Positions 24,412-60,478 of a DNA stretch of 64,000 bases are shown in pieces. The notes below the pieces were generated by a model. That model was given only the letters and a program-made list of their open reading frames with translations. It made no database searches and had not been told where the DNA came from. Each line of letters opens with the position of its first letter. Within the stretch, counting starts at the first letter, position 1. Origin of the DNA: Neoconidiobolus thromboides FSU 785 (taxonomy: Eukaryota > Fungi > Entomophthoromycota); the NCBI GenBank assembly GCA_025603075.1, contig MU626371.1:4276-68275 (forward strand), read 5' to 3'. A program made the translations under genes and the position numbers.

Positions 24412-25240
24412 TAAAAATTAATAACTATAGTATACAATATATTGATTTATTTTAACTATTACTTACAATATTTAAAGTTTAAGAACCTTCAAAATAGTTC
24501 TTTTAAGAGGTGAGCGTCCTTTAACTTTTGTCTTACCAGCTTCATCTTCAGAGCCTTCACCTGCAAATGTGACCATTCTATCAAAAACCTCTTCCTCAAT
24601 TCCATCGATTTCTGCTTCAAGCTCTTTATCTCTACCTTCCTTGTTTTTAACCACTTCTCTGTAATAATATTCACAATCATGAAGTAAATCTGTCAATTCT
24701 TTTACAGTTGCAGCTGAGTTGAAACGTTTATCATAGTTACACAACTCATAGATAGTGGCTTTACCGTCATTGGTTACAACTCCTTGATTAAACTCACGTT
24801 TAATGCTAGAAAATAAGCCACGAATCGATAGAGTATTTACAGAAAGGGCGGCAGCAGAGAACAAAGCGATATTTAAAAATTTCATCTTGATTTGATTTAT
24901 ATACAATTGATAGGCAGATATATGATTCTTATTTAAAAAGTTTAGTTATATTTGAATGTTTTTTTTGACTATTTATAGCTAATTTTTTTCATTCATTTTA
25001 TTTCTCTATACTTTGAATAGTTTTATTTTAAAGGGATTATGGATGATAATAATTGTTAAACGGATAATTTAAACACTATACTCAAATTTAGTAGTTTCAC
25101 CATACTCTATTTGCAATAAACGGACTATTTATTGTTCTTAAAATGAAATTAATGTTACCTTACGGATATAATAAAGTCTATTATGTAACATTTCCTTTAG
25201 GCATCTAAAAACACGCTAAAATGGCTTTAAATATTTTGTC
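24412..25240. repeat. Segmental duplication, copy A (gene plus 3' and 5' flanks); copy B at ~27950-29020
   Basis: Shared non-coding text, e.g. TTTAAAAATTAATAACTA(T/C)AGTATAC...TTACTTACA and CGGATAATTTAAACA...TTTTGTCCA. Confidence 0.85.
24472..24885 (-). CDS. Small secreted protein with one helical module (137 aa from MKFLN)
   Basis: Signal peptide MKFLNIALFSAAALSVNT, KR site, intronless; paralog at 28009-28635. Confidence 0.85.
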   Translation of the reverse strand: MKFLNIALFSAAALSVNTLSIRGLFSSIKREFNQGVVTNDGKATIYELCNYDKRFNSAATVKELTDLLHDCEYYYREVVKNKEGRDKELEAEIDGIEEEVFDRMVTFAGEGSEDEAGKTKVKGRSPLKRTILKVLKL

Positions 25241-28008: not shown

Positions 28009-28635
28009 TTAAAGTTTAAGTATCTTTGAAATAGCCCTTTTAACCATTGAGCTTTTATCATCCTTTACATTGCCTACGTCGTCTTTAGGGCCTACATCAC
28101 CTGCAAACGAATCTATCCTTTTAAAGACCTCATCCTCAATTCCATCGATTTCTGCTTCAAGCTCTTTATCTCTACCTTCCTTGTTTTTAATTACAGCTCT
28201 ATAAAAGTATTCACAATCCTTAATTAAATCTAATAACACTTTTACAGTTTTAGCTGAGTCGAAACGATTACCATAGCCAGATAATTCAGAAATAGTGGCT
28301 TTACCGCCATTGGTTACAACGCCTTGAGGCTCATGGGAGGATTCTTTGTTATTATCATTTTGAAGCGATTTCAATATTTTGTTCAATTTTTTACCACTAT
28401 TTTTGCAAATGCTTTGGCATTGGTCATTATTGTTATTATACTTTTCAATCACCCTTAACGTAGCATGGCAGCTTGACAAACATTTATCAGTAGCATAACG
28501 TACCACTAGCTCCCTTTTACTATAGTTGACACCTTGGTGAATTTCACGTTTAACATTTGAGAATAAACTATCAACGGATAAAGTATTTACAGAAAGAGCA
28601 ATGGTAGAAAATAAAGCAAAGTTTACAAATTTCAT
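28009..28635 (-). CDS. Secreted protein, paralog of 24472-24885 with an extra Cys-containing insert
   Basis: Signal peptide MKFVNFALFSTIALSVNT; shares KNKEGRDKELEAEIDGIE; intronless. Confidence 0.88.
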   Translation of the reverse strand: MKFVNFALFSTIALSVNTLSVDSLFSNVKREIHQGVNYSKRELVVRYATDKCLSSCHATLRVIEKYNNNNDQCQSICKNSGKKLNKILKSLQNDNNKESSHEPQGVVTNGGKATISELSGYGNRFDSAKTVKVLLDLIKDCEYFYRAVIKNKEGRDKELEAEIDGIEDEVFKRIDSFAGDVGPKDDVGNVKDDKSSMVKRAISKILKL

Positions 28636-31327: not shown

Positions 31328-32254
31328 TTATGGCTTGAATTTACTCTTAGCATCCACAATTTTAGCTTTAAGGTACTCCAACTCTTGTTGTAACTTAACC
31401 GTTTTAGAAGAATCAGTATTAAGTTGAACAAAAGCGATATTGCAATCATTAATAAGGTTATCAAAATCAGCGTAAGACCTAGCAGCGGCTAAACGACTAT
31501 CTACTTTTACTAAAGTAGCGATTTGAGTACTACCACCTGGATTACCACCTGGATTACCACCTGGATTACCAGTATCCGGATGTTCTCTTGCAAAATCTTC
31601 TTGAGCTACTTTAATACGGTTTTGTACTCGAAGCCATTCACTATTTAATTCATTGATTCGGCTTGGGTCATTGTTTAATAACTCATTATAAGATGTACTA
31701 CATGAGCTTAATATAACATCAAACTCTTCTCTCTTTTTTACTAGCTTGATTTTGTTTTCAATGTCACAGCGTTGGAAAATAGTTTGACCTGGAGGTATAG
31801 TAGGTATTGGGGTCGAGGAGGAAGTTGTAGTGGAAGTAACAGGAGGCTTAGTGGTAGAAGTAGCAGTAGTGGAAGTAACAGGAGGATTTGTAGTAGTAGA
31901 AGTAACAGGAGGATTTGAAGTGCTAGGACCACCTGGTGGATGAGATAAAAAGTAATCGTTTTTATATTTTGAAAATTGCTCTTTGATGTAAACAATTTCA
32001 GCTTGAAGTGCAATCGCATTTTGTTGAGATGAATCTCTTGCCAATAAAGTATTATAGGCATTGTTACAATCATTCATTATTTCATTAAACCCACTTTCAG
32101 TAGTTGCTGCCTTTAAACGAGACTCGAATTTACATTCGACTGCTATTGGACCATACCCACGTCTTGTTATTTGATGAGTAACATCATTACTAAGTAATGA
32201 AAAAGCAGAGATGTAAGAAACCCCAAAAGCTAGGATAAGGTTATAAAATTTCAT
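31328..32254 (-). CDS. Secreted protein with three helical modules separated by Pro/Thr/Ser and GNPG linkers
   Basis: Signal peptide, RR site, three internal repeats (ESRL..A..F..I..DC..AY..LL), PPVTSTT x3 and GNPG x3 linkers. Confidence 0.9.
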   Translation of the reverse strand: MKFYNLILAFGVSYISAFSLLSNDVTHQITRRGYGPIAVECKFESRLKAATTESGFNEIMNDCNNAYNTLLARDSSQQNAIALQAEIVYIKEQFSKYKNDYFLSHPPGGPSTSNPPVTSTTTNPPVTSTTATSTTKPPVTSTTTSSSTPIPTIPPGQTIFQRCDIENKIKLVKKREEFDVILSSCSTSYNELLNNDPSRINELNSEWLRVQNRIKVAQEDFAREHPDTGNPGGNPGGNPGGSTQIATLVKVDSRLAAARSYADFDNLINDCNIAFVQLNTDSSKTVKLQQELEYLKAKIVDAKSKFKP

Positions 32255-32298: not shown

Positions 32299-32310
32299 GT
32301 TTATATAGTT
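32299..32310 (-). promoter_or_regulatory. TATA element AACTATATAAAC upstream of the 31328-32254 gene
   Basis: Identical 12-mer also at 34194-34205 and 36187-36198, each 33-45 nt upstream of an ATG. Confidence 0.7.
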
Positions 32311-33329
32311 TTCATTCATAATTAGTAAAAGTTAAATGTTTTTTGTTTTTTTTGTGAGTTATTAATCTTATTACAATTTATCAACTCATGACCAAGGCGC
32401 TCTGGAATCCTTAGCATCATCCTCTATTTTTGGGTTAAAAATAGAAATGAATTAGTGATTTTCATTGTATTTTTAGACTGCTTAAAATATTAAAAATTGA
32501 TTGCGATCACTATTTGTAATTCTTAATTTAAACTATTATGTTTCTTCGTTCTATTGTTTCATATCTGTATTATTTATAATATATTACATCGTTTTTAACT
32601 TATCATAATTGTTCATTAACATAATTAAATTAAAACGATAAGTTTCAGTATTGAAAACAATAAAGTGACTACTTTTTTAAGGATAAATACCCTTAAGGAA
32701 AAAAATGAAATAATTCAAGGCTAAATGGCCATAAGATAAGTCATAATATAAAGAGCTCAATCCGTGTGTATAAAATTAACTCATCAATGTTATTAATAGT
32801 AGTTAAATAATAATAAACAACTCAAATGAGACACTTGTTCAAATTGTTGTTTTATTTTTAGACTAAAGAATTTTATTTTTTTTAGTCATCTTTAAATTGC
32901 TATTATTTTCAATAAAAACTTGAATTGTTAAAACTTAATACTACAAATTAAAGGATAATTTGATAAGGTAAATTCATATATATAATTAACTTATCAGTGA
33001 TAGAAAATATATATTAATGTATTATTGAGTCTAAAAGAGACATGTCTATACACAAGTAGTTTATTTTTGTAGTCGAATATCTAATAATAATTCAATTATT
33101 TTTAGATTAGAAGTGAAAATTCGGCTTTTCTATACTCACTTTTAAATTATTATTACTTAAAAAGGTTGGTATGAGTGTGCTCTTTATTTATCCAAGAGTT
33201 CATTCCTTTTTATATAATATTCAAGAAAGTAGTCAGTAATGAAGCAAAGATAGAATTTTATAATATCAGTCTTATTGTATAAAGTTAGAAACTTGAGAAA
33301 TAAATAATAGATTGTGTAAAAAAAACATA

Positions 33330-33402
33330 TGCCTTCTATCGGAATCGAACCAATGACCTTCCGCTTACTAGGCGGACGCTCTGCCAACTGAGCCAAGAAG
33401 GC
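33330..33402 (-). tRNA. tRNA-Thr (anticodon AGT), intronless
   Basis: GCCTTCT/AGAAGGC acceptor stem, TGGCTCAGTTGG A-box, TCCGC-CTAGTAA-GCGGA anticodon arm, GGTTCGATTCC B-box, oligo-T terminator immediately downstream. Confidence 0.95.
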
Positions 33403-33732
33403 AAACATGACAATACAGAATTTGAGTTTATCCACAAAATATAAAACATAGTAACTTTATTATTATAGCTATTGATGACAAAAGTTGAAATAGCATCAGC
33501 AAATTTAATTGATCAATATCTATATTCATAATTTTTATAAGTTATATATTAATATGAAGTTAATTCAATGAACTATCATTCATTAAAAACAAAGGAAGTA
33601 AAAATCCATGTAGCATAACTCATTATACTATAAAAACATAAAACTCATAATTAAAGTTGAATACTTTATTGATGATGCAATGTAAAAAGAAAATTAAAAT
33701 TGATAAGGGGATAAGATAAACAAATATCTTCT

Positions 33733-34161
33733 TTACCAACCCCAACCCCATGGACGTCCCCAACCCCATCCTCCTCTCCATCCCCATGGACGTCCCCAAC
33801 CCCATCCTCCTCTCCATCCCCATCCTCCTCTCCAACCCCATGGACGTCCCCAACCCCATCCTCCTCTCCAGCCTCCTCTCCATCCTCCTCTCCATCCTCC
33901 TCTCCAGCCCCATGGCTCAGCAGCAAAAGCGGGTGCACCTGGAGTCGAGTTTAATTGCTCATCTTGTTTTTCCTCTACTAAATTTGAGTTTGGTTCCACT
34001 AAGTTCGAATTACTCTCTTCCATTAAGTTAGAAATAGGTTGATTTAAGTTTTCTTTCTCAAGGAGTAAAGCATTATTTTGATTCAATTCATTTTCAGTAG
34101 CTGGAATGGTGCTGCAGTTAACTACAGCTGCAGTGAATAGGATTAAATGATTGAGTTTCAT
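33733..34161 (-). CDS. Secreted Gly/Trp/Arg-repeat peptide precursor 1 (142 aa)
   Basis: Signal peptide + acidic pro-region + PAFAAEP junction + 59-aa tail made only of G, W, R and P. Confidence 0.85.
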   Translation of the reverse strand: MKLNHLILFTAAVVNCSTIPATENELNQNNALLLEKENLNQPISNLMEESNSNLVEPNSNLVEEKQDEQLNSTPGAPAFAAEPWGWRGGWRGGWRGGWRGGWGWGRPWGWRGGWGWRGGWGWGRPWGWRGGWGWGRPWGWGW

Positions 34162-34193: not shown

Positions 34194-34205
34194 GTTTATA
34201 TAGTT
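34194..34205 (-). promoter_or_regulatory. TATA element AACTATATAAAC
   Basis: 33 nt upstream of ATG 34161; identical to the elements at 32299 and 36187. Confidence 0.7.
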
Positions 34206-34423
34206 TTGTTTCTTACGCTTATCACTTTTATCAGTTTAAAGTTTATCAAGCACCAGTTCATTTTGTAATGTTTATTATTATGTTTAGTTTGTTCTATTGT
34301 TTTATTGTTTATTATATTTCTTATAGCATGATTAATTTTTATCAATTTAGGTTTATTAATTTTTTCATTTTTTATATTAATTGTTAATTCTTTTTATCAG
34401 CTGTTAGTTAATCAAGTGGTTTA

Positions 34424-34424
<1 letters not shown>

Positions 34425-34469
<45 letters not shown>

Positions 34470-34490
34470 GTTATTATTGTTATCATTATT
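34425..34490. repeat. (TTA)n microsatellite, intergenic
   Basis: Direct reading. Confidence 0.9.
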
Positions 34491-35614: not shown

Positions 35615-36154
35615 TTACCAACGACGCCCACCTCTCCATCCTCCCCAACGTCCACCTCTCCATCCTCCCCAACGTCCACCTCTCCATCCTCCCCAGCGTC
35701 CACCTCTCCATCCTCCGCGATAGTAGCCACCGCCTCCATAGTAGCCTCCACCTCCATAATAACCACCACCCCCATAGTAGCCGCCACCCCAACGTCCACC
35801 TCTCCACCCTCCCCAACGTCCACCTCTCCATCCACCCCAACGTCCACCTCTCCATCCTCCCCAACGTCCACCTCTCCATCCTCCCCGGCGTCCACCTCTC
35901 CATCCTCCACGCCATCCACCTCTACGCCAAGGTTCAGTAGCAAAAGCAGGGGTACTTGGTGAAGAATTTAATTGTTCTTTATCCGCTTCAATCAAACTAG
36001 GATTGGGTTGTAGTAATAAGTTGGAAACGATAGGTTCCATTGGTACCTTTTGAAGGAATAAATCATTGCTTTCAGTACTATCAGAGGATGAGATAGGAAT
36101 TATATTACCACAAATTAAAGTGGCAATAAACGGTAATAGTAAAGTGAATTTCAT
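35615..36154 (-). CDS. Secreted Gly/Trp/Arg(/Tyr)-repeat peptide precursor 2 (179 aa)
   Basis: Paralogous pro-region (PIVSNL, EQLNS, PAFATEP) followed by GGWRGGRW octarepeats flanking GGG(G)YY repeats. Confidence 0.85.
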   Translation of the reverse strand: MKFTLLLPFIATLICGNIIPISSSDSTESNDLFLQKVPMEPIVSNLLLQPNPSLIEADKEQLNSSPSTPAFATEPWRRGGWRGGWRGGRRGGWRGGRWGGWRGGRWGGWRGGRWGGWRGGRWGGGYYGGGGYYGGGGYYGGGGYYRGGWRGGRWGGWRGGRWGGWRGGRWGGWRGGRRW

Positions 36155-36186: not shown

Positions 36187-36198
36187 GTTTATATAGTT
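36187..36198 (-). promoter_or_regulatory. TATA element AACTATATAAAC
   Basis: 33 nt upstream of ATG 36154. Confidence 0.7.
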
Positions 36199-36712
36199 TA
36201 TTGTAGGTTATACATCACTCTTATTTAGGATTCAAGTATCAAGTATCAAATATCAAGTGTCTAGGTTTAGACTATTACTTTAGTTTGAGTTATTAGGTTA
36301 TATATTTGTATTATATATTAAATTCATAGATACTGAATAGCGTAAGTGATAAACAATATATTTTTTTAAAGTTTATTTTACTAATATATTAATTGATAGA
36401 AATTGTAAAAGTAATAATAATTTGATTTCATAATATTTAAATAAATTGATAACTAATAATAAATATATATACTAGTTAAACAATTTTATTGTTTTTCATT
36501 AATATATAATAATAGATTGAATTAGAAGTAATAGAGTTTAAAAAATATTAATCAAAATAAATCATTTTATTTGAATAACATCAAATTAAACAATTTAACA
36601 TCTCTATCAAGTCAAAATTGAAATAAAACAAATAAAGCCTAAATAACAAAAATAACCTTTATTCAATAATCACAAAAAACAATATCATCCAAAGCCCCTT
36701 TCACCACCTTAT

Positions 36713-48553: not shown

Positions 48554-49063
48554 CTTTTTTGAATAATAGCTAAACTGAAGTTTTGATAGGTTAAAAAGCA
48601 ATGCTTTCTTTTTGAATTTTGTTATAAACTTTAATGAATTTATCTTTTTTTATATACTGTAAATGAAGATTTTTTGATTTACTATTTTTATTTTTTATAA
48701 TATTTCGATTTATGGATTTTGATTTGATTTTATAATTTTTTAAAAGGGGTTTTATTGGTTAATTAATTCGATTTTAGAAATTTTAAATAAAAGGTTGAGA
48801 ATACGTATTGAGTGGCTACAGTAAAGTAATAACAACAACGAAGGGTTTAATAACAAAGGAAATAGAAACTACAATGTGTAACATATAGATAATAAAAAAC
48901 TGTCGCTAAATTATATTATATTATCGATTCTATTAAAATAGTAAATTTAATGACAACCTTATTATTGAAATTTCAATTTCATTACTGCGAGTTAACTGTG
49001 CAAAAATCGACTTTAAAAAGAATTGACTGCGTAACAAAAGAACCCATCTTTAACTATTCAAGC

Positions 49064-51445
49064 ATGAAAGTAGAAGTGAATATTAAAGAAAATAGTCGAT
49101 TACTCGAAAAGGTACGCTCAAACATCCCAGGCTTAGATTTAGCTATTGTAGATTATATCAAAGGATATTTAGAAGATACCACTAGTATCTCCGTTGAAGG
49201 CGATGCTTTTCTTACGGATTTTATTGAGCCCTTTTTAAAAGATTCTATTGCTGAAGAAAAAGTATATCAAAATTTATGTCAAGATTTTAAGAATTTATTC
49301 ATCCAATACAATGCTCAGTTAAAATTAGATACAGATGAAAATGGACCAAAGGTATTACGTCAATTGGATGTACCTTTACAAATGACTAAACAACAAGCCA
49401 TGTCTTCTACATTTAAGTTTGATCCAACTTCAACGGATATTGAGTCAGCTAACAAACGTAAAGTAGCTTCTCAAGTGGATACTAAAAAATTAGAAAAAGC
49501 AGAAAAAAAGATTGCAGAAAAGATACAAAAAAGAGAAAGAAGAACTTTATATGAAGCTAGTAAAATTGTTACTAAAGAACAACAAAATTTGGATATTTTA
49601 GCTATTAACCCTATTTTGGATTATACTACTACTAAAGGTAAATCAAAAGATATTAAGTTGGATCTTTTCGATATCTCTTTTGCTGGTAAGAGAATTCTTA
49701 CTGATGCTTTATTAACCCTCGCTTATGGTAGACGTTATGGTGTGGTTGGTAGAAATGGTATTGGTAAATCCACTTTATTAAGAGCTATTTCTAGACGTGA
49801 ATTAAATATCCCTACTCATATCAGTATTCTTCACGTAGAGCAAGAGGTAATAGTTTTATAAATTTATAATTAAACAGTAATTAAATAGTTTTTATTAATA
49901 GATTGCTGGGGATGATACACCTGCTTTACAATCAGTATTAAAAGCTGATTTATTCAGAGAACATCTTTTAGCTGAAGAAATTAATTTTACTCAATTAATT
50001 CAATCGATCGATGATCAACTTTCAAACCCTGATATTGAAAAAGAATTAAAAGAACAGCTTGAAGATGAAAGAGATGAAGCTGATAGTAAATTGAAAGAAG
50101 TTTATACTAAACTTGAAGATATTGAATCTGATAAAGCAGAAGCAAAGTAGTTTTTTGATTTAGTTTATTTATTGACTTTTTTTGACTGATTTTTTATAGA
50201 GCTTCTACTATCCTCTGTGGTTTAGGTTTTGGCCAAAACCAATTACAAAATGCCACTAGAACATTCTCTGGAGGTTGGAGAATGAGATTGGCGTTAGCAA
50301 GAGCTTTATTCTGTAAACCTGATCTTTTACTTCTTGATGAACCTACGAATATGTTGGATATCCCCGCCGTAATTTGGTTAGAAAATTATTTACAAACATG
50401 GGAAAGTACTTTAGTAGTTGTATCCCATGATCGAGAATTTTTAGATGAGGTAGCTACGGATATTATCCATCAACATAGTGAAAAATTAGACCAATATAAG
50501 GGCAACTTTACTTTCTTTTATAGTACTAAAGAAGAGCGTCGTAAAACAATGGCTCGAGATTATGAAAATCAATTGGTTTATCGTAAACATTTACAAGATT
50601 TCATTGATAAAAATCGATACAATGCCAACACTGCAACTCAAGCTCAAATGAAAATCAAAATATTAGAAAAATTACCAGTTTTAGAAAAACCTGAAGATGA
50701 GATTGTTGTTAGTTTCAGATTCCCAGATGCAGAGTCTTTATCCCCACCTATCTTACAATTATCCAATGTTACTTTTGGTTATTCACCAGATAAAATTCAA
50801 CTTAGTAAAGTGGATTTGGATGTACAAATGGATTCAAGAGTAGCTGTTATTGGTCCCAATGGTGCTGGTAAATCTACCTTAGTAAGTTTAATTTAACATT
50901 ATTATATAACTTAATATTAACATTTTATTTAGCTTAAACTATTATCTGGTAAATTAGAACCAAATAAAGGTTTCTTAAATCGCCATGGTAGATTAAGGTT
51001 TGCTTTCTTCACCCAACATCACGTTGATCAATTAGATTTAAATGATACAGCTGTTGGTTATATGGCTAAGACTTATCCAGGTAAATCGGATGAAGAATAT
51101 CGTCGAAGATTAGGCTCTTTTGGTATCACTGGTATGGTGGGATTACAAAAAGTAGCTACTTTATCAGGAGGACAAAAATCGAGAGTAGCATTTGCATGTT
51201 TAGGTTTACAAAATCCACATATTTTAATATTAGATGAACCTACCAATCATTTAGATATGGAATCTATGGATGCTTTAATCGATGCTATTAAAGCTTTTAC
51301 TGGTGGTGTTATCCTTGTCTCTCATGATGAGCGTTTCATTAATTCTGTTGCTACTCAGCTTTGGATCTGTGATAATAATACGGTGACTAAGTTTCAAGGC
51401 AACATTAAGGATTATAAGAAAATGGTTGCTCCTCCAGAGCTTTAA
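49064..51445 (+). CDS. GCN20: ABC-F protein Gcn20/ABCF3, multi-exon
   Basis: Two ABC cassettes (GRNGIGKST, FSGGWRMRLALA, LLLDEPTN; GPNGAGKST, LSGGQKSRVAFA); no TM domains; likely start MKVEV at 49064. Confidence 0.93.
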
Positions 51446-52563: not shown

Positions 52564-55500
52564 TTAAAACCCACCTTCAAGGTTGGTTATTGGGGTGCCA
52601 ACTTTAGTGGCTAATACGGCTGGTTCAGTGGATGGTAATGGTTGGATATCGTAAGTTAAAACCATATCGCCACCTGATTTCCATAAATGATAACGAACTG
52701 TAGCTAAAGTCATGGTTAAAGAAACAGGCTAATAATTTTATGTTAATATTCATATATAAAAACACGATAAATTATATTACCTGTCCGTTACAACTCAATA
52801 CGATCCAATTTTCTGGTATAAATGGTGGTAATGTTGAAGGTAAAGGAGCTTTTATCTTATCTGTTGTAGTAGTAGTAGTTGGTGTTGAATTACTGTTAAC
52901 TTCCGATTTGACTTGATTTTGTCGATTAAGTAATAAATTATGCAAAATATCTGGCGTAAAGTTGAGTTTGTCCCAAATATACCCAACCAACTTTTTACAT
53001 CTTAATGTTCTACTTGCTAATAATCGTGAGGAGCTAAAACATATATTAATACATTGTTAAAATAACTATAGAAGTTGTTACGATGAAGGCAAAGAAGATA
53101 ACCCAGAAGACTCTTGTGGTTTAAGTAAAAACGCTATTTTTACTGGTTCTTTAAATGGGATTGAATCCTAAATAAAGCAATATTAATTGTTTTATATATT
53201 CTATGATTTTTAAATTACTTACATTAATTAAGCAATTTTTAATCCAACTTGGTATATTCTTCGTGAGTAAAGGATAATCTTGTATTTGATTACCTAAGGA
53301 ACCTGAGAATACATCGATACATCTAGAAACGTCATGAGATTCTTCAGAAAGGAGTAGGTTGATATGTGGGGGTAAATCAAGTGGTGGTATCTTGGTTAAA
53401 TTTGGTTCATTAAGAGAAGGTGACTTTGTAGAATTAACATTAGTTTGTGGTACTGTGTCTTTGGGTGGTGGTGGTATTGGATTTTCTGAGCTTGTTTTAG
53501 GTTGAGATTCTTCTGGAATTGGTGCATTATTTTGATTTGTTTCAGTTGATGGAGAGGAGGAGGAAGAGTTATTAGGTTTTTCAGGAGTAGTTGGACTGAT
53601 AGGAGTAAACTTACTGTTATGTGGGCTTAAAGTTGGATTTAACATATCGTTTATTGGTCGTGTACTTCCTTGTGAGAAATTATCGGTTGAGCTTAAATTT
53701 AATGCTTTTGGTGGATCTGGAGAACGGTTTAATTTCTTTTGTGAAAATTGACGCAAACGCCCCATAAAGCTTGAAGACGAAGAAAGGGCAGGTGGTGGGG
53801 GATTGATAGATTGATTTCCACCTGGCGAGGTTGGAGTAGAAACTGGTTGACTTAGAGTGTTTTCATTTTGATAGGAATACTGACTATTATTATTAGTTGG
53901 ACTTTGAGATTTATCTGATAGATTATTTGTTGTATAAGATCTCGCTATCATAGCTGGGGGCGAAGGTATTTTATCAGGGTTATAATTAAAATACCCTTGA
54001 CCATCCATTCCAGTTTTAGAAGTAAGTATAGAGCCTGTACTCATCTTCCGTGGGCCAGCCATTGAAGCTGTTGGTTTAGGTGGTAGATGATGATGATTAG
54101 TTATACTAGATAGTGTAACAGAAAATGGACTTAACGGTGTATCATCCTTAACAATGGAAGTATGAACAGGTTGAGGACAAGTAGGCGAATTAAGAGAGAC
54201 AAGTATTTTATTACTTGTTTCTTCCTTATTCTCATCATCTGTCACTGTATTGTTCGCTTTATTTAATTCTTCTCCTTTTTTTGCTTTTTCTTCAAGTAAA
54301 TCAAGCTGAGCTTTTTCCTCTAAATATTTTTTAGTAAAGGCTTTGAATAAACTTTTAATAACCCATTTCCCTATGTTAATTTGTGTATCTGAAATTATAT
54401 TGGACTCTTTATTTGTAGATTCAATTTTCATATCTTCAATATCATCCCCATAAATCTCAGCATCAAAACATTTGTTTTCATCAAGTCGAACCATAAGTGA
54501 ACCAAGCTTTGTATCAACTGTACACCAGCTCGGTACTGAAATTAAACTGTTAATCTCTTGATACACTTCATCGATATTAGCCTGTCCATAACTTCTAACA
54601 AAGCAGCACTAAAACGGATTAAAATATTGTAAAACAGAAAACAAAAATTACTTTAACGATATCCCAAAGCATGACTTCACCTTTAGAATCCAAAGATAAA
54701 ACTTGAAATCTGTTTGAAAGTATAAAACATTTTGTTAAACCCGTCTTTCCCTTAATGATTTCTAAAGGTTTTAAACGAATTGGAACTAAATTTGATTCGA
54801 ATTCTTCATCCTCAGATGAGTCATTATTATCATTTTGGGCATTTGTTATATTTTCTATAGTCGCTCCATTTGCTAAAGTGTTTGGAAATGTATGCTTTTC
54901 AAAATCAACTAAATTTGTTTCATTCCCATAATTCCCATCAAACTGAGAAATTGAAACTGGATTGATATTGATTAACCCTAGCTGATCCCCAACACCACTA
55001 TCTGAAATAATAGGTTCTTTCTCTTTTACAAGTTCCGTAGGTTCTACATCCTCCCATTTAGAAATCTCGGCGTTGGTAGTTGATGTCCATACACATGAAT
55101 GATCTTTATGTGCAATGATGCTTGTAATCCCCTTTTCTTCTTGACAGATGGTAACTGTATTGCTATCATCATCGTTGTCCAATTCCTCTAAATAATAATG
55201 GTTCCCTTCACTATTTATACCTTTGTTATCATCTGTTATATCCTGTGGTATTAATGTTTTAGTAACCATCCCGTTTCTTGATCCTGCATAAAAATATTTG
55301 AAATCAGGCTCTGCTGAAAACAAAGTCCACACCGGTTCGGTATGCATTGTGTAAGTTTTTATACAGCGCTGGGAGGCCATAGACCACAATTTTATTGTAC
55401 AATCACTAGACCCCGATAAGATCCATCTTCCGTCATCTGACATTAATAATGAACGGACAAGATCAGAATGTCCAGTAAAGTGAGCGATGGTACCAGAATT

Positions 55501-56264
55501 AGGACTCGATCTTGGATCCCAAAGTCGAATCCAGCCATCTGGTGAGCCTGCCGAAACCAGCCTTCCAGTTTGACTGACAGCCAATGAGTAATAAGATGTA
55601 TTCGGCGCTTCAGGATCACATAGTGACAATAAAGAATTAATGTCCATACCTTTATTTTCTATTGTTGACGTTGCTTGGTTTACATCCCAAATATTAATTT
55701 TGCCATCTAAGCCAGCTGAAAATAACCATTCACTTGACTGGACATAGGACAAACATTTTACAAAGTCCTTATGGAATCCAACGGTACTCACCTTGTTTTC
55801 CTGCTGCTCTTTATAGGGTTGCCATAGTTTAACGGTGAGATCCGAAGAGGCAGTAAAAACTAAAGTTTATTAAGAGTGAATTTAGATTTTAATGCAGCCA
55901 AATTATTTTTACCTGACTGTCCATTATGAGCCACAGTAACATCATTTATCCAATCAGAATGGTGTTGGGAAGAAAAATAAGGCTCTGAGTGCTTGTTTAC
56001 CTTAAATCGCTTATTTAGTTCCAGTTGGCTATAAGTTTATATAATTAAAACAAGAATGGTAATTACTTTGGAATCTACTTGAGTATCCACTTTCCAACCA
56101 ACGGTCAATCCATCCCTTCCCCCAGAATATAAAATACCATTCGTTTCATCATAAGCCATTCCATTGACGCCTAAGCAATGTGTTGGACTCTCTTTTTTTA
56201 TTGCTTCATTGGTTACTTCGTTAGGGATAATATACGCTATCGAGTGCTTGGTTGCCCGCTTCAT
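52564..56264 (-). CDS. WDR48: WD-repeat protein WDR48/UAF1 (deubiquitinase activator), multi-exon
   Basis: HCLGVNGMAYD...LYSGGRDG, WD repeats (LFSAGLDG, GHSDLVRSLL, LSGSSDCTIKLW), LMVRLDENKCFDAEIY, C-terminal SUMO-like-domain region. Confidence 0.9.
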
Positions 56265-56832: not shown

Positions 56833-59800
56833 TTAAGCAATTTTACAATCATCAGCTTTCTTTTTCTTTTTTATGATCGCTTTTTGCTTCTCCCATGGTG
56901 TTGTTGAGTTTTGTGGTTGTGACGTATTAGGGCTGGCCATCTTAATTTGGTTAGGAGAAATCGCCCCTTCAGACTGGAAACCTCTTCGATTACTATATTT
57001 CCTTGTATATAATGGCCTGGTCAGTGGTGTTGTCTTTTTTATTGGAGTTTTAGTTAACCCAGTACTAATTTGCGTGATTGGCTATAAAACAATAATTTTT
57101 TAGTGATTTATTGTAATATATTATAGCCTGATATTACCTCACTTCGTGTGTGACATAATGCATTGGCATGCTTTACACATTTTGGATGGCATATTAATCC
57201 GCAATCTAAATTTTGTTTTAACCAAATTTCAAATAATTACTAATGAATATACCGTCACACAACATTGCTTGTTGTTTAATATATTGTCTACAAATTTTAC
57301 ATAGAACAGCTAATAAAATATATTAGTAACAAGATATATTGTTATAAGCTAGTTACCTTTTTCAAAAGTACTTTTAATAAATTGATGCTCTTCATCTTGT
57401 TTAACATAATAGCTTGGAAGCCTTACTAATCCTGTTGATTCTGGTGAAGTGATTAAGGGATTGTCAGCATGAGGATAGCAGGTCCGCCAAAGAGAATCAG
57501 TAATTTGGTTATCCCTTATGCTTTCTTCCAATTTTTTGTCGTTTTCGTTTAAATCTAAGTTGCCAAAATCCTAGTTTAAATTTGATTAATATTTGAAGTA
57601 CTTCTAATAGTAAATCATGTTTACCATTGCCAGCTGTGACTCTATAATCCAATCATGGAAAAATAACTCTTCAGCTGTGGGTCTAGTCACTGGCTCTTTT
57701 TGAAAACATAAAATAAGGAAATTGTGTAGATTCTAAAATTATTAGAAAGAATCAAGAACTAAACAAAAATAATATTACCTCGCTTAAATCGTCTGGGAGT
57801 GGTGGATGATGGTCTTCTACAATACGATATAGAGCAGCCATAGCATTCAATTCTGAATATGGAGGTTTCCCTGTAAGTAATTCAATGATTGTACATCCTA
57901 AACTCCTATAAATAAAGTTAATTAAGTTTTACTTTAATATTGTTTCAAATTACCAAATATCTGAAGCTGTAGAAGCGCCCTGTAAACTAATAACTTCTGG
58001 TGCCACTAAAACAATATTAGAACAAAATAAAAATATATAAGTTGTAAATTACTCCAATTAGGTGTACCAGCCACAATCTCACCATTGTCACTTGATTTTA
58101 TATTTAAATTAAGCGAAACACCAAAATCAGTGAGTTTGACTTTCCCATCCTTTGTTGTTAAAATGTTGGCTGCTTTTAAATCACAATGAACAACCTAAAT
58201 AATTTAATTATCTTTAATATAAAAATTAAATAAAATTACATCTTTAGCATGTAGATATATCAAACCTTCCAAAATTTGTGAAGTATATGAACAAACCAAG
58301 GTAGGTGAAAAAGTTCCATAAGATCTTAAAAGCTGTTGAAGTGATCCATTCTCTACAAACTCTAAAATGATATCCAAGCAAGATTCCGATTGTACATAGC
58401 CCAAATAATTAACTATTCTTACATGTGAAAGCGACTTTAACAGATCTACTTCTCCCATTAAGCTTTCAGCTTCAACTTTACTTCTCCCATCCAAATCAAT
58501 TCTTTTGACTGCTGTTATTTGCCCTGTTTGCATGTTGAGTGCTTTATATACTGACCCAAATTGCCCTTTGCCTAAGCAATCTCCCAATTGGTATTGCGTT
58601 ATTGCTTTACTTGTTGGATTGATTAAAGATATCCTATCATTTCTATATACTTTGTTACCATCGCTTCCTGCCCTTGGTCTATAAATCATACCATCGCTAT
58701 TTTTACTAACTGGCTTTTCACTATGATTACGTGAATGTGATTTTTTTAGTCCGAAGTCACTTTGCAGTAATTGTTTTTGACTTGTAGGATCATTAAATGA
58801 ACGCGGTATGTTTGTTCTTTCTGTTAATTGATTCATAGCAAAATCATTCATGTTTACTATATCCTCCTTTTTAAAAGTAGATTTCATGCTTAAAGATGGA
58901 CTAGATAAAATGGACTCTGCTCTTGATATGAAGCTACCATCATCTAAATCCCAGTCTATAAAATCCAATCGTAAAACATCCCCCCTCGATTCTTTGGTTG
59001 TATTTTTTTTAATTGATAAATCTAAATCTTCAATCAACCCTCCTTTGCCCACTCGGTAATTTTGTGGCTTTCTTACTCTATCTTCAGCTGTCGGAACTGG
59101 GTCATCAAAGTATTCTTTATTTAACGATGGTTCTGAGTATACCCCTGAGTCATCTATTTCATCATTATTTCTATAAAGCTCTTCTTCTTTATATTCAAAT
59201 GAATCATCTTGAGTATATGTTACACTATCTTTAACATCTGATTTTGATTTAAGTTTTAAGTTAAGTGAGCTATCCTCTTTTTTTAATAAGTTAGGCGTAC
59301 TATTTGACTTTTCTTTCTTGTCTTCCAATTTACCTAAATAATTATTTTGAGCTTTTGGATCAAATAAAGGCGGCTTATATACTGGATCAAATAGCTGCCT
59401 TAAATTTTGTATCTTTCCAGTTGGGCTTAAAGGACTGTTAGGCGGTGAATTTTCTTTTTTTTTAAGTTTATCTTTTTGATGTAAAACTTTTGAGTTTGAG
59501 TCTTTCAAAGGTAATAAAGGCAACATAGATTTACGATTATTAGCTTTAGCTATACTAATTTCTTCAAATACAGATTCTTTTCTTGTTTGAATTGGTAACA
59601 TTGACTTCCTTTTTTCTGTTTTATCGAAATGATGAAACCTTGGCTCTTTTTTCCTTAATATAGAAAAGTTATCTAAGGGTGTACTTAATAATTCGCCTGT
59701 TTCATTTTTTTTCACTATTTTATCCTTATCTTGTTTTTTATTGACCAATACCTTTTCTTCAATTATCTCAGGTGATGTTTTTACTGGAGAGGTAACCATT

Positions 59801-60478
59801 GTCTCTTCATCTTCATACGTCGATTCATTTAGTGATAATATCACTTCATTTTTGAAGATGGCTTCGTTTGTAATTGGGCTACTTTTTGAGCCTTTTTCTG
59901 AGTTTCTATTTGAAGAGGATCTGCTAGGGAAGGATACATTGCATAACTTTCTTGCCACTGCTAATATAGTAAGAAACACTCTAGACATATCTTTCCCTTC
60001 ATAAAGGTCTACCGTTTCAAACAAGTCAGAAGCTTCTAAACCTAGTTTAGTAGCAGCATTTAAAAATGCAAATATGTTTGACATCTAATAAAAGTTAGAC
60101 CAAAAAATATATAACAAATTTGTTTACTTGGTTAAACGGCGTCGGGGTTTTACTAATCTGTCTTATTATCCCGGGTTTTATTTGGTTTAATAGTCTAAAA
60201 AATAATCAATATTTTTAACATACTAAAGAAAATTTAGCTTAAACTTACTCACACAACATGATCCCATCCTTTAAAAATAGATGGACATTTCCATCTGGTA
60301 TCGAGTAGCCCAGTAACGACTCCATAAACTCCAAAGCAGCTTTTTGATTACTTAACAGCTGTTCTGCACGATATTGTCTAATCTGTTTCTCAGAATGCCC
60401 TGAATTAAATGAGATTGGCCTATTTCCATTCATCTGTTTACTTGTTATTAGCATTAATTAGTTTAAATTACTCCCCAT
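56833..60478 (-). CDS. Cdc15/SepH-like Ser/Thr kinase with N-terminal CH domain, C-terminal C1 domain and polybasic CaaX tail, multi-exon
   Basis: CH (FLKDGIMLC...[13 protein letters not shown]); kinase ([24 protein letters not shown]); C1 H-x12-C-x2-C-x10-C-x2-C-x4-H-x2-C-x7-C; ends [12 protein letters not shown]-stop. Confidence 0.85.

Follow-up and report, generated by a model that had tools for sequence, protein, structure and literature searches.

A tandem pair of secreted-looking Trp/Arg/Gly repeat proteins in Neoconidiobolus thromboides as candidate precursors of a cationic peptide

Two paralogous genes with Trp/Arg/Gly repeat tails

The window, i.e. the whole stretch of 64,000 nucleotides analysed here, carries on its minus strand an intronless open reading frame for a protein of 142 amino acids (ORF1, 33733..34161), which is composed of a predicted signal peptide, an acidic spacer and a tail built from Trp, Arg and Gly. 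The signal peptide (residues 1-16, 34114..34161) starts with MK, followed by a hydrophobic core and the residues V-N-C before Ser17; it was called from hydropathy, which supports the signal-peptide-like N-terminus proposed in the initial annotation, and its cleavage site was inferred from the -3/-1 rule. The spacer (residues 17-83, 33913..34113) is rich in Asn, Glu, Leu and Ser, lacks Arg and, with 11 Glu and one Asp versus two Lys, has a net charge of -10 (pI 4.05). It leads into a junction of the form EQLNS-x-P-xx-PAFA-x-EPW (residues 68-84, 33910..33960), which includes an N-x-S/T sequon and agrees with the paralogue described below at 13 of its 17 positions. The tail (residues 84-142, 33736..33912; 7.1 kDa, pI 12, net +10) is made up of 26 Gly, 20 Trp, 10 Arg and 3 Pro and nothing else, so that Gly accounts for 44% of its 59 residues. 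RGGW and GWGRPW units recur in it, the Trp residues are spaced 2-4 residues apart and create 20 GW/WG dipeptide contexts, and Pro is found exclusively as R-P-W, an echo of the E-P-W at the junction. The residue counts, the +10 of the tail, the -10 of the spacer and the RGGW/GWGRPW repeats, which had all been pointed out before, were reproduced from 33733-34161 (minus strand). The single Cys of the protein (residue 16) lies within the predicted signal peptide, and not one dibasic pair occurs anywhere in the protein.

At the DNA level, the tail-coding part of ORF1 has a G+C content of 63%, compared with 26.7% across the window, because the TGG, GGN and Arg codons are required. It forms a tandem array of 12-nt units (RGGW) and 36-nt units (GWGRPWGWRGGW), and some of the 36-nt copies are 97-100% identical to each other. 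Therefore, the four-letter alphabet of the tail is the product of repetition, not of chance.

When the window's own genome (24.6 Mb) was searched in all six frames, one other member was found, ORF2 (35615..36154, minus strand), a tandem paralogue of 179 amino acids that lies 1.5 kb from ORF1 in the same orientation; the remaining weak matches were long RGG-containing frames elsewhere. ORF2 has a like signal peptide, which contains its single Cys (residue 15), a like spacer and a like junction (residues 60-76, 35927..35977) that aligns with the one of ORF1. Its tail (residues 76-179, 35618..35929) comprises 104 amino acids (53 Gly, 24 Arg, 19 Trp and 8 Tyr), in which RGGW/RGGRWGGW arrays stand on both sides of a (GGGGYY)x4 core. 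Three RR pairs are present, placed irregularly relative to the repeat units. The two proteins have much in common: the spacers measure 59-67 amino acids, are both free of Arg and share a pI of 4.05, both tails have a pI of 12, and Gly makes up 44-51% of the tails, the remainder being essentially aromatic residues and Arg. Charge is another matter. The initial annotation had regarded an exact balance between the anionic and the cationic part as the design principle of the precursor, but in ORF2 a spacer of -6 faces a tail of +24. The -10/+10 equality of ORF1 is thus a coincidence of one copy and not a property of the family.

When ORF1 and ORF2 are aligned, all gaps are in frame. According to the Nei-Gojobori method, synonymous sites are saturated (dS about 2), and dN amounts to 0.37 overall, 0.55 in the spacer and 0.13 in the junction. 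Therefore, the duplication is old and both copies have been under purifying selection. Judged from these values, the junction is the most constrained segment apart from the repeats, which would suit a site of recognition or cleavage. The repeat unit, on the other hand, differs by copy, with 36 nt in ORF1 and 24 nt in ORF2, and each is homogenised; the arrays therefore expanded separately. Three DNA runs with other organism codes hold 74-94% of the words of the locus. ORF1 and ORF2 are best described as old tandem paralogues restricted to this species or near relatives.

No stable structure emerged from modelling. An AlphaFold2 single-sequence model of ORF1 reached a pLDDT of 54 with no fold; low-confidence helices appeared solely in the signal peptide (7-14) and at residues 23-49, and the tail was coil. 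The ESM Atlas models (pLDDT 0.45 and 0.38) had no fold either. A wall anchor, a GPI signal or a cross-linking Cys was found in neither ORF1 nor ORF2. Both products are predicted to be small, intrinsically disordered proteins that would be secreted. Intact, they amount to 14.4 kDa (ORF1) and 18.0 kDa (ORF2), and the ORF2 tail has 11.6 kDa.

Transcription, sequence variation and neighbouring genes

Evidence from reads was obtained as Logan contigs, and three runs from three studies (X4, X7 and X9) are probable RNA runs, a status guessed by the tool. ORF1 is represented in all three, by X4 (33841-34094), X7 (33536-34148, in the two pieces 33841-34148 and 33536-33771, which are colinear with the genome) and X9 (33878-34148), whereas ORF2 is present in X4 (35642-36154) and X9 (35920-36149) but absent from X7, the one run that shares its organism code with the best DNA holder. 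Regulation may thus differ between the paralogues. The DNA between the two genes is uncovered in the RNA-type runs, except for repeat fragments that continue into unlike sequence; in the DNA run X3 all bins of the locus are covered. ORF1 and ORF2 are probably transcribed. Together with the in-frame alignment of the paralogues and a dN far below the saturated dS, the probable-RNA contigs on the ORF bear out the earlier view of ORF1 as a genuine gene. Its 3' untranslated region extends at least over 33536..33732 (minus strand), as seen from the X7 contig 33536-33771, which shows no differences from the genome.

The RNA-type contigs end at the start codons or within 13 nt of them. These ends would fit a very short leader behind a TATA-type 12-mer, AACTATATAAAC, which is located 33 nt upstream of the ATG of ORF1 (34194..34205, minus strand) and again 33 nt upstream of the ATG of ORF2 (36187..36198, minus strand). 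A further copy (32299-32310, minus strand) lies upstream of the ATG of a mucin-like gene for a 308-aa protein, and thus the element precedes, by 33-45 nt, the ATGs of three neighbouring genes for secreted proteins that belong to two unrelated families. Within the window, its three matches, all on the minus strand, compare with 0.08 expected; genome-wide there is no enrichment (49 matches versus 40 for the control).

ORF1 and ORF2 lie within a series of ORFs in the same orientation whose N-termini are signal-like. The secreted-looking 308-aa protein (31328-32254, minus strand) has three helical two-Cys modules, and its linkers are Thr/Pro-rich (PPVTSTTT) with GNPGG, hence the term mucin-like; its sole Pfam match, to the Drosophila 'New glue' family, is sub-threshold (E 0.0065). 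Two further secreted-looking proteins (24472-24906 and 28009-28635, both minus strand) are paralogues with a common C-terminal Glu-rich domain and no Pfam match in either, and each carries a KR of the Kex2 type about 10 residues past the signal peptide. For one neighbour gene the nearest Atlas clusters are fungal. A tRNA-Thr(AGU) gene (33329-33403, minus strand), covered by an X4 contig, sits 330 nt downstream of ORF1 amid the secreted-protein genes, and the spacer upstream of ORF1 contains a (TTA)n microsatellite of about 24 copies (34421-34490). In contrast to the intronless secreted genes of the window, three housekeeping genes are split by introns; these encode an ABC-F ATPase (48950-50896, plus strand), a WDR48-like WD40 + DUF3337 protein (53151-55791, minus strand) and a CH-domain protein kinase (58204-60084, minus strand). 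A microsporidian SSU model matched nothing in the genome, and a microsporidian origin was dismissed on account of the introns and of the fungal Atlas clusters.

The repeat tail of ORF1 varies between runs. Counting the best-supported differences alone, three positions (33781, 33793 and 33823) differ in other runs, and all three are synonymous Gly changes. Since 21% of the possible single-base changes in the tail are synonymous, the probability of this outcome is about 0.009. In addition, X3 carries a second version of the 3' flank of ORF1 (33377-33915) at half depth and with about 7% divergence, and in the corresponding contig 144 nt of the repeat tail, equal to 48 codons and in frame, seem to be missing. 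This may reflect variation in repeat number or a second allele. As the 27-nt sides of the apparent joints in X3 (144 nt and 1744 nt) fall within repeats, these joints were set aside. Short stretches flanking both paralogues (33525-33555 and 36454-36490) match a 3.2-kb high-depth contig of X7 on opposite strands, which points to a dispersed repeat, perhaps a MITE, that an abundant transcript from elsewhere contains as well.

Search for relatives and comparison with known systems

The initial annotation had recognised no equivalent fungal family, and our searches agree with it, as neither a relative nor a described family turned up among Pfam, word, profile or metagenome matches. Pfam scans of ORF1 and ORF2 up to E 10 gave nothing meaningful and no family at E<=0.01, the best score belonging to an unrelated coiled-coil DUF (E 0.022). 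A word-index search with residues 1-92 of ORF1 had zero matches. The profile search of the pro-region that had been recommended earlier was run with HMMER, exhaustively, against 1.84 billion protein representatives; the profile was built from both N-terminal parts (the first ~98 residues, with signal peptide, spacer, junction and first repeats), and it retrieved 0 matches from other organisms. Among the JGI metagenomes, 600 pattern matches contained 0 relatives. On this basis ORF1 and ORF2 would represent a sequence-orphan form of the secreted, glycine-rich, cationic repeat peptides or proteins.

A word-index search with the tail yielded the single match that passed E 0.1, a marginal one (E 0.08) to the bacterial metagenomic protein P0001 (106 aa, L009:4001-4321). 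Like ORF1, P0001 has a signal-like N-terminus followed by repeats of the WRGGW/HGGW/GWGW type, but it uses His in place of Arg and has a different, Tyr/Trp-rich C-terminus. The likeness is one of convergent low complexity. The P0001 gene belongs to no family and adjoins CstA and a small gene of the Sel_put family, an uninformative neighbourhood. Other leads were discarded. The nearest ESM Atlas clusters score 0.84 and 0.78 and include an oomycete 'glycine-rich protein' and a bacterial hypothetical, but shuffled sequences also reach such values, and the same holds for a sub-threshold hit (0.76) to a cluster of bacterial cyclophane RiPP precursors. A link to the insecticidal coronatin-2 of Conidiobolus coronatus was dropped, as the papers found provide no sequence for comparison.

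Peptides rich in Trp and Arg form an established class of antimicrobials that act on membranes. Indolicidin and tritrpticin, of 13 aa each, are released from a precursor with a cathelin domain, and the Trp domain of puroindoline is part of a folded seed protein. The tails of ORF1 and ORF2 are similar to these in being cationic, very rich in Trp and devoid of Cys or a stable fold, and the production of Trp/Arg-rich antimicrobial peptides from a precursor with a removable pro-part invites comparison with the layout of ORF1 and ORF2. Unlike the precursors of indolicidin and tritrpticin, however, the two proteins lack a cathelin domain according to Pfam, and the ORF1 tail is a tandem repeat with 44% Gly. 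Defensin-type prepropeptides likewise proceed from a signal peptide to an anionic and then a cationic segment, as ORF1 does with its -10/+10, but the tails of ORF1 and ORF2 are free of Cys, and a charge balance is absent from ORF2.

The closest resemblance in composition is to nematode peptides. nAMP-LP-104 consists, apart from an N-terminal Gln, of W, R and G only, contains RGGWRGGW and inhibited six bacteria at 64-512 ug/ml (PMC10414684). In view of this measured antibacterial activity of a W/R/G-only peptide, the antimicrobial role suggested in the initial annotation appears reasonable by analogy, although the activity is weak and the likeness to the ORF1 and ORF2 tails is convergent rather than a sign of kinship. 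Together with the nematode NLP/CNC group, nAMP-LP-104 shares with the two fungal proteins the character of secreted Gly-rich peptides with aromatic/Arg repeats. On the other hand, the organisms belong to different kingdoms, no sequence relationship to NLP/CNC was detectable (0 profile matches, and word searches), and ORF1 and ORF2 differ by an acidic spacer of 59-67 aa, a conserved junction and tails that are 2-4 times longer.

Structural proteins offer another comparison. In plant GRPs and in the RGG regions of FUS, as in the two tails, Gly spacers alternate with Arg and Tyr/Trp stickers, and the GGGGYY blocks of ORF2 fit this pattern. In contrast to such condensate formers, ORF1 and ORF2 have no Pfam GRP match, prefer Trp over Tyr and possess an acidic N-terminal block; compared with nuclear RGG proteins, they are predicted to be secreted. 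Fungal Kex2-processed repeat proteins have KR or RR between their units, whereas ORF1 has no such pair and the RR pairs of ORF2 are irregular. Dikaritin-type RiPPs of fungi differ by DUF3328/UstYa, which is missing from the 20 neighbouring ORFs of the window that were scanned, and by KR.

Possible functions of the repeat tails

From the precursor-like order in both copies, i.e. a hydrophobic N-terminus, an anionic part and a cationic part, and by analogy with the peptides above, we tentatively propose that ORF1 and ORF2 encode precursors of a cationic, membrane-active peptide, a reading to which we assign a probability of about 0.38. With the acidic spacer attached, the sticky cationic tail would stay in solution and do no harm while in the secretory pathway. 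A protease that is not Kex2-like would cut at or beside the conserved junction, PAFA-x-EP|W. Candidate cuts would be a post-proline cleavage or a cleavage of the subtilisin/chymotrypsin type after Phe, followed by dipeptidyl trimming. The released tail of 7 kDa (ORF1) or 12 kDa (ORF2) would then bind anionic membranes at the interface through its Arg and Trp residues, and might damage competing microbes or host cells. For N. thromboides, 18 subtilisin-like proteases have been reported (PMC6169396).

Of the prepro-peptide of the initial annotation, the layout and the conserved junction stand, but no dibasic or other canonical site occurs at the junction. It is solely the top conservation of this segment that suggests cleavage there. 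The absence of a canonical processing site from either junction and of any dibasic pair from ORF1 argues against a precursor, and the contrast with the two neighbouring secreted genes, which have KR soon after the signal peptide, is evident. The unconserved charge neutralisation (-6 versus +24 in ORF2) points in the same direction. Moreover, with 104 aa and a GGGGYY core, the tail of ORF2 bears a closer resemblance to structural glycine-rich proteins than to a peptide antibiotic.

Most peptides secreted by fungi follow the Kex2 dibasic rule. Provided that the tails are set free and have activity, they would add a fungal, sequence-unrelated case to the Trp/Arg/Gly peptide antibiotics, with a processing signal unlike the Kex2 rule. 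It is conceivable, if rather improbable, that they constitute the first family of ribosomal peptides for host defence or competition to be described from an early-diverging (entomophthoralean) fungus; in that case, a peptide of W, R and G alone would be freed from its acidic carrier at the non-dibasic PAFA-x-EP|W, and further R-P|W cuts in ORF1 would give nested WGW...GRP peptides.

Nearly equal to the peptide-precursor reading, and close to it, is the possibility that the proteins form a self-associating extracellular material such as a surface coat, a conidial glue or a wall-bound layer, which possibly works uncleaved. This explanation, somewhat doubtful in its own right, corresponds to the cation-pi adhesive or coacervate that the initial annotation had listed as an alternative and that we regard as about as likely. 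The Gly spacers with their Arg and Trp/Tyr 'stickers' might condense by cation-pi and pi-pi contacts, and the acidic block could pair with the cationic block or face outward. The composition of the tails, with aromatic residues and Arg as the only residues between 44-51% Gly, is in line with a material, and so is the block layout of ORF2, since RGG/W arrays that flank (GGGGYY)x4 resemble structural glycine-rich proteins. Polyproline-II helices held by Arg-aromatic contacts have been described for an RGG-Y/W model peptide (bioRxiv 10.1101/2020.07.30.229062). The disorder of both models, the position of the genes within a run of co-oriented secreted genes and the otherwise rare 12-mer promoter element that they have in common with the adjacent mucin-like gene likewise speak for a material. 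However, both proteins are small and lack a wall anchor, a GPI signal and cross-linking Cys, and a strongly conserved junction next to an acidic spacer without Arg is a feature to be expected of precursors more than of structural glycine-rich proteins. In the case of condensation into a coat or glue, the proteins would provide a compact natural 'sticker-spacer' system outside the cell that is relevant to cation-pi adhesion.

Two further explanations are improbable, and to a similar degree. Arg/Trp peptides are known cell penetrators, and the tail of a host-directed effector might enter insect cells and bind nucleic acids or the Trp pockets of Argonaute; the predicted secretion and the 20 GW/WG contexts within 59 residues would agree with this. 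Yet in known Argonaute hooks the Trp residues are spaced much more widely than the 2-4 residues seen here, and the presence of ORF1 in X7, a run that bears the organism code of the fungus itself, implies expression independent of a host. Equally hard to sustain is a polyprotein that yields numerous very short peptides, or a RiPP precursor with cross-linked Trp. The regular R-G and R-P-W units, the RR pairs of ORF2 and the sub-threshold Atlas lead to a cyclophane RiPP precursor cluster would favour it, but ORF1 lacks dibasic sites, no tailoring-enzyme domain (DUF3328/UstYa or radical SAM) was detected in the neighbours scanned, and the Atlas score of 0.76 is within the range of shuffled proteins.

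Least probable of all is an intracellular RGG-type protein that binds RNA or undergoes phase separation, or no functional gene at all. The repeat units resemble RGG boxes, and the other weak genome matches to ORF2 are RGG-containing frames as well, but both paralogues have a hydrophobic signal-like N-terminus, which also makes the nucleic-acid binder considered in the initial annotation unlikely, and, in contrast to RGG-box RNA-binding proteins, they contain no RRM, KH or other domain in Pfam searches; the notion of a non-gene runs counter to purifying selection and the probable transcription.
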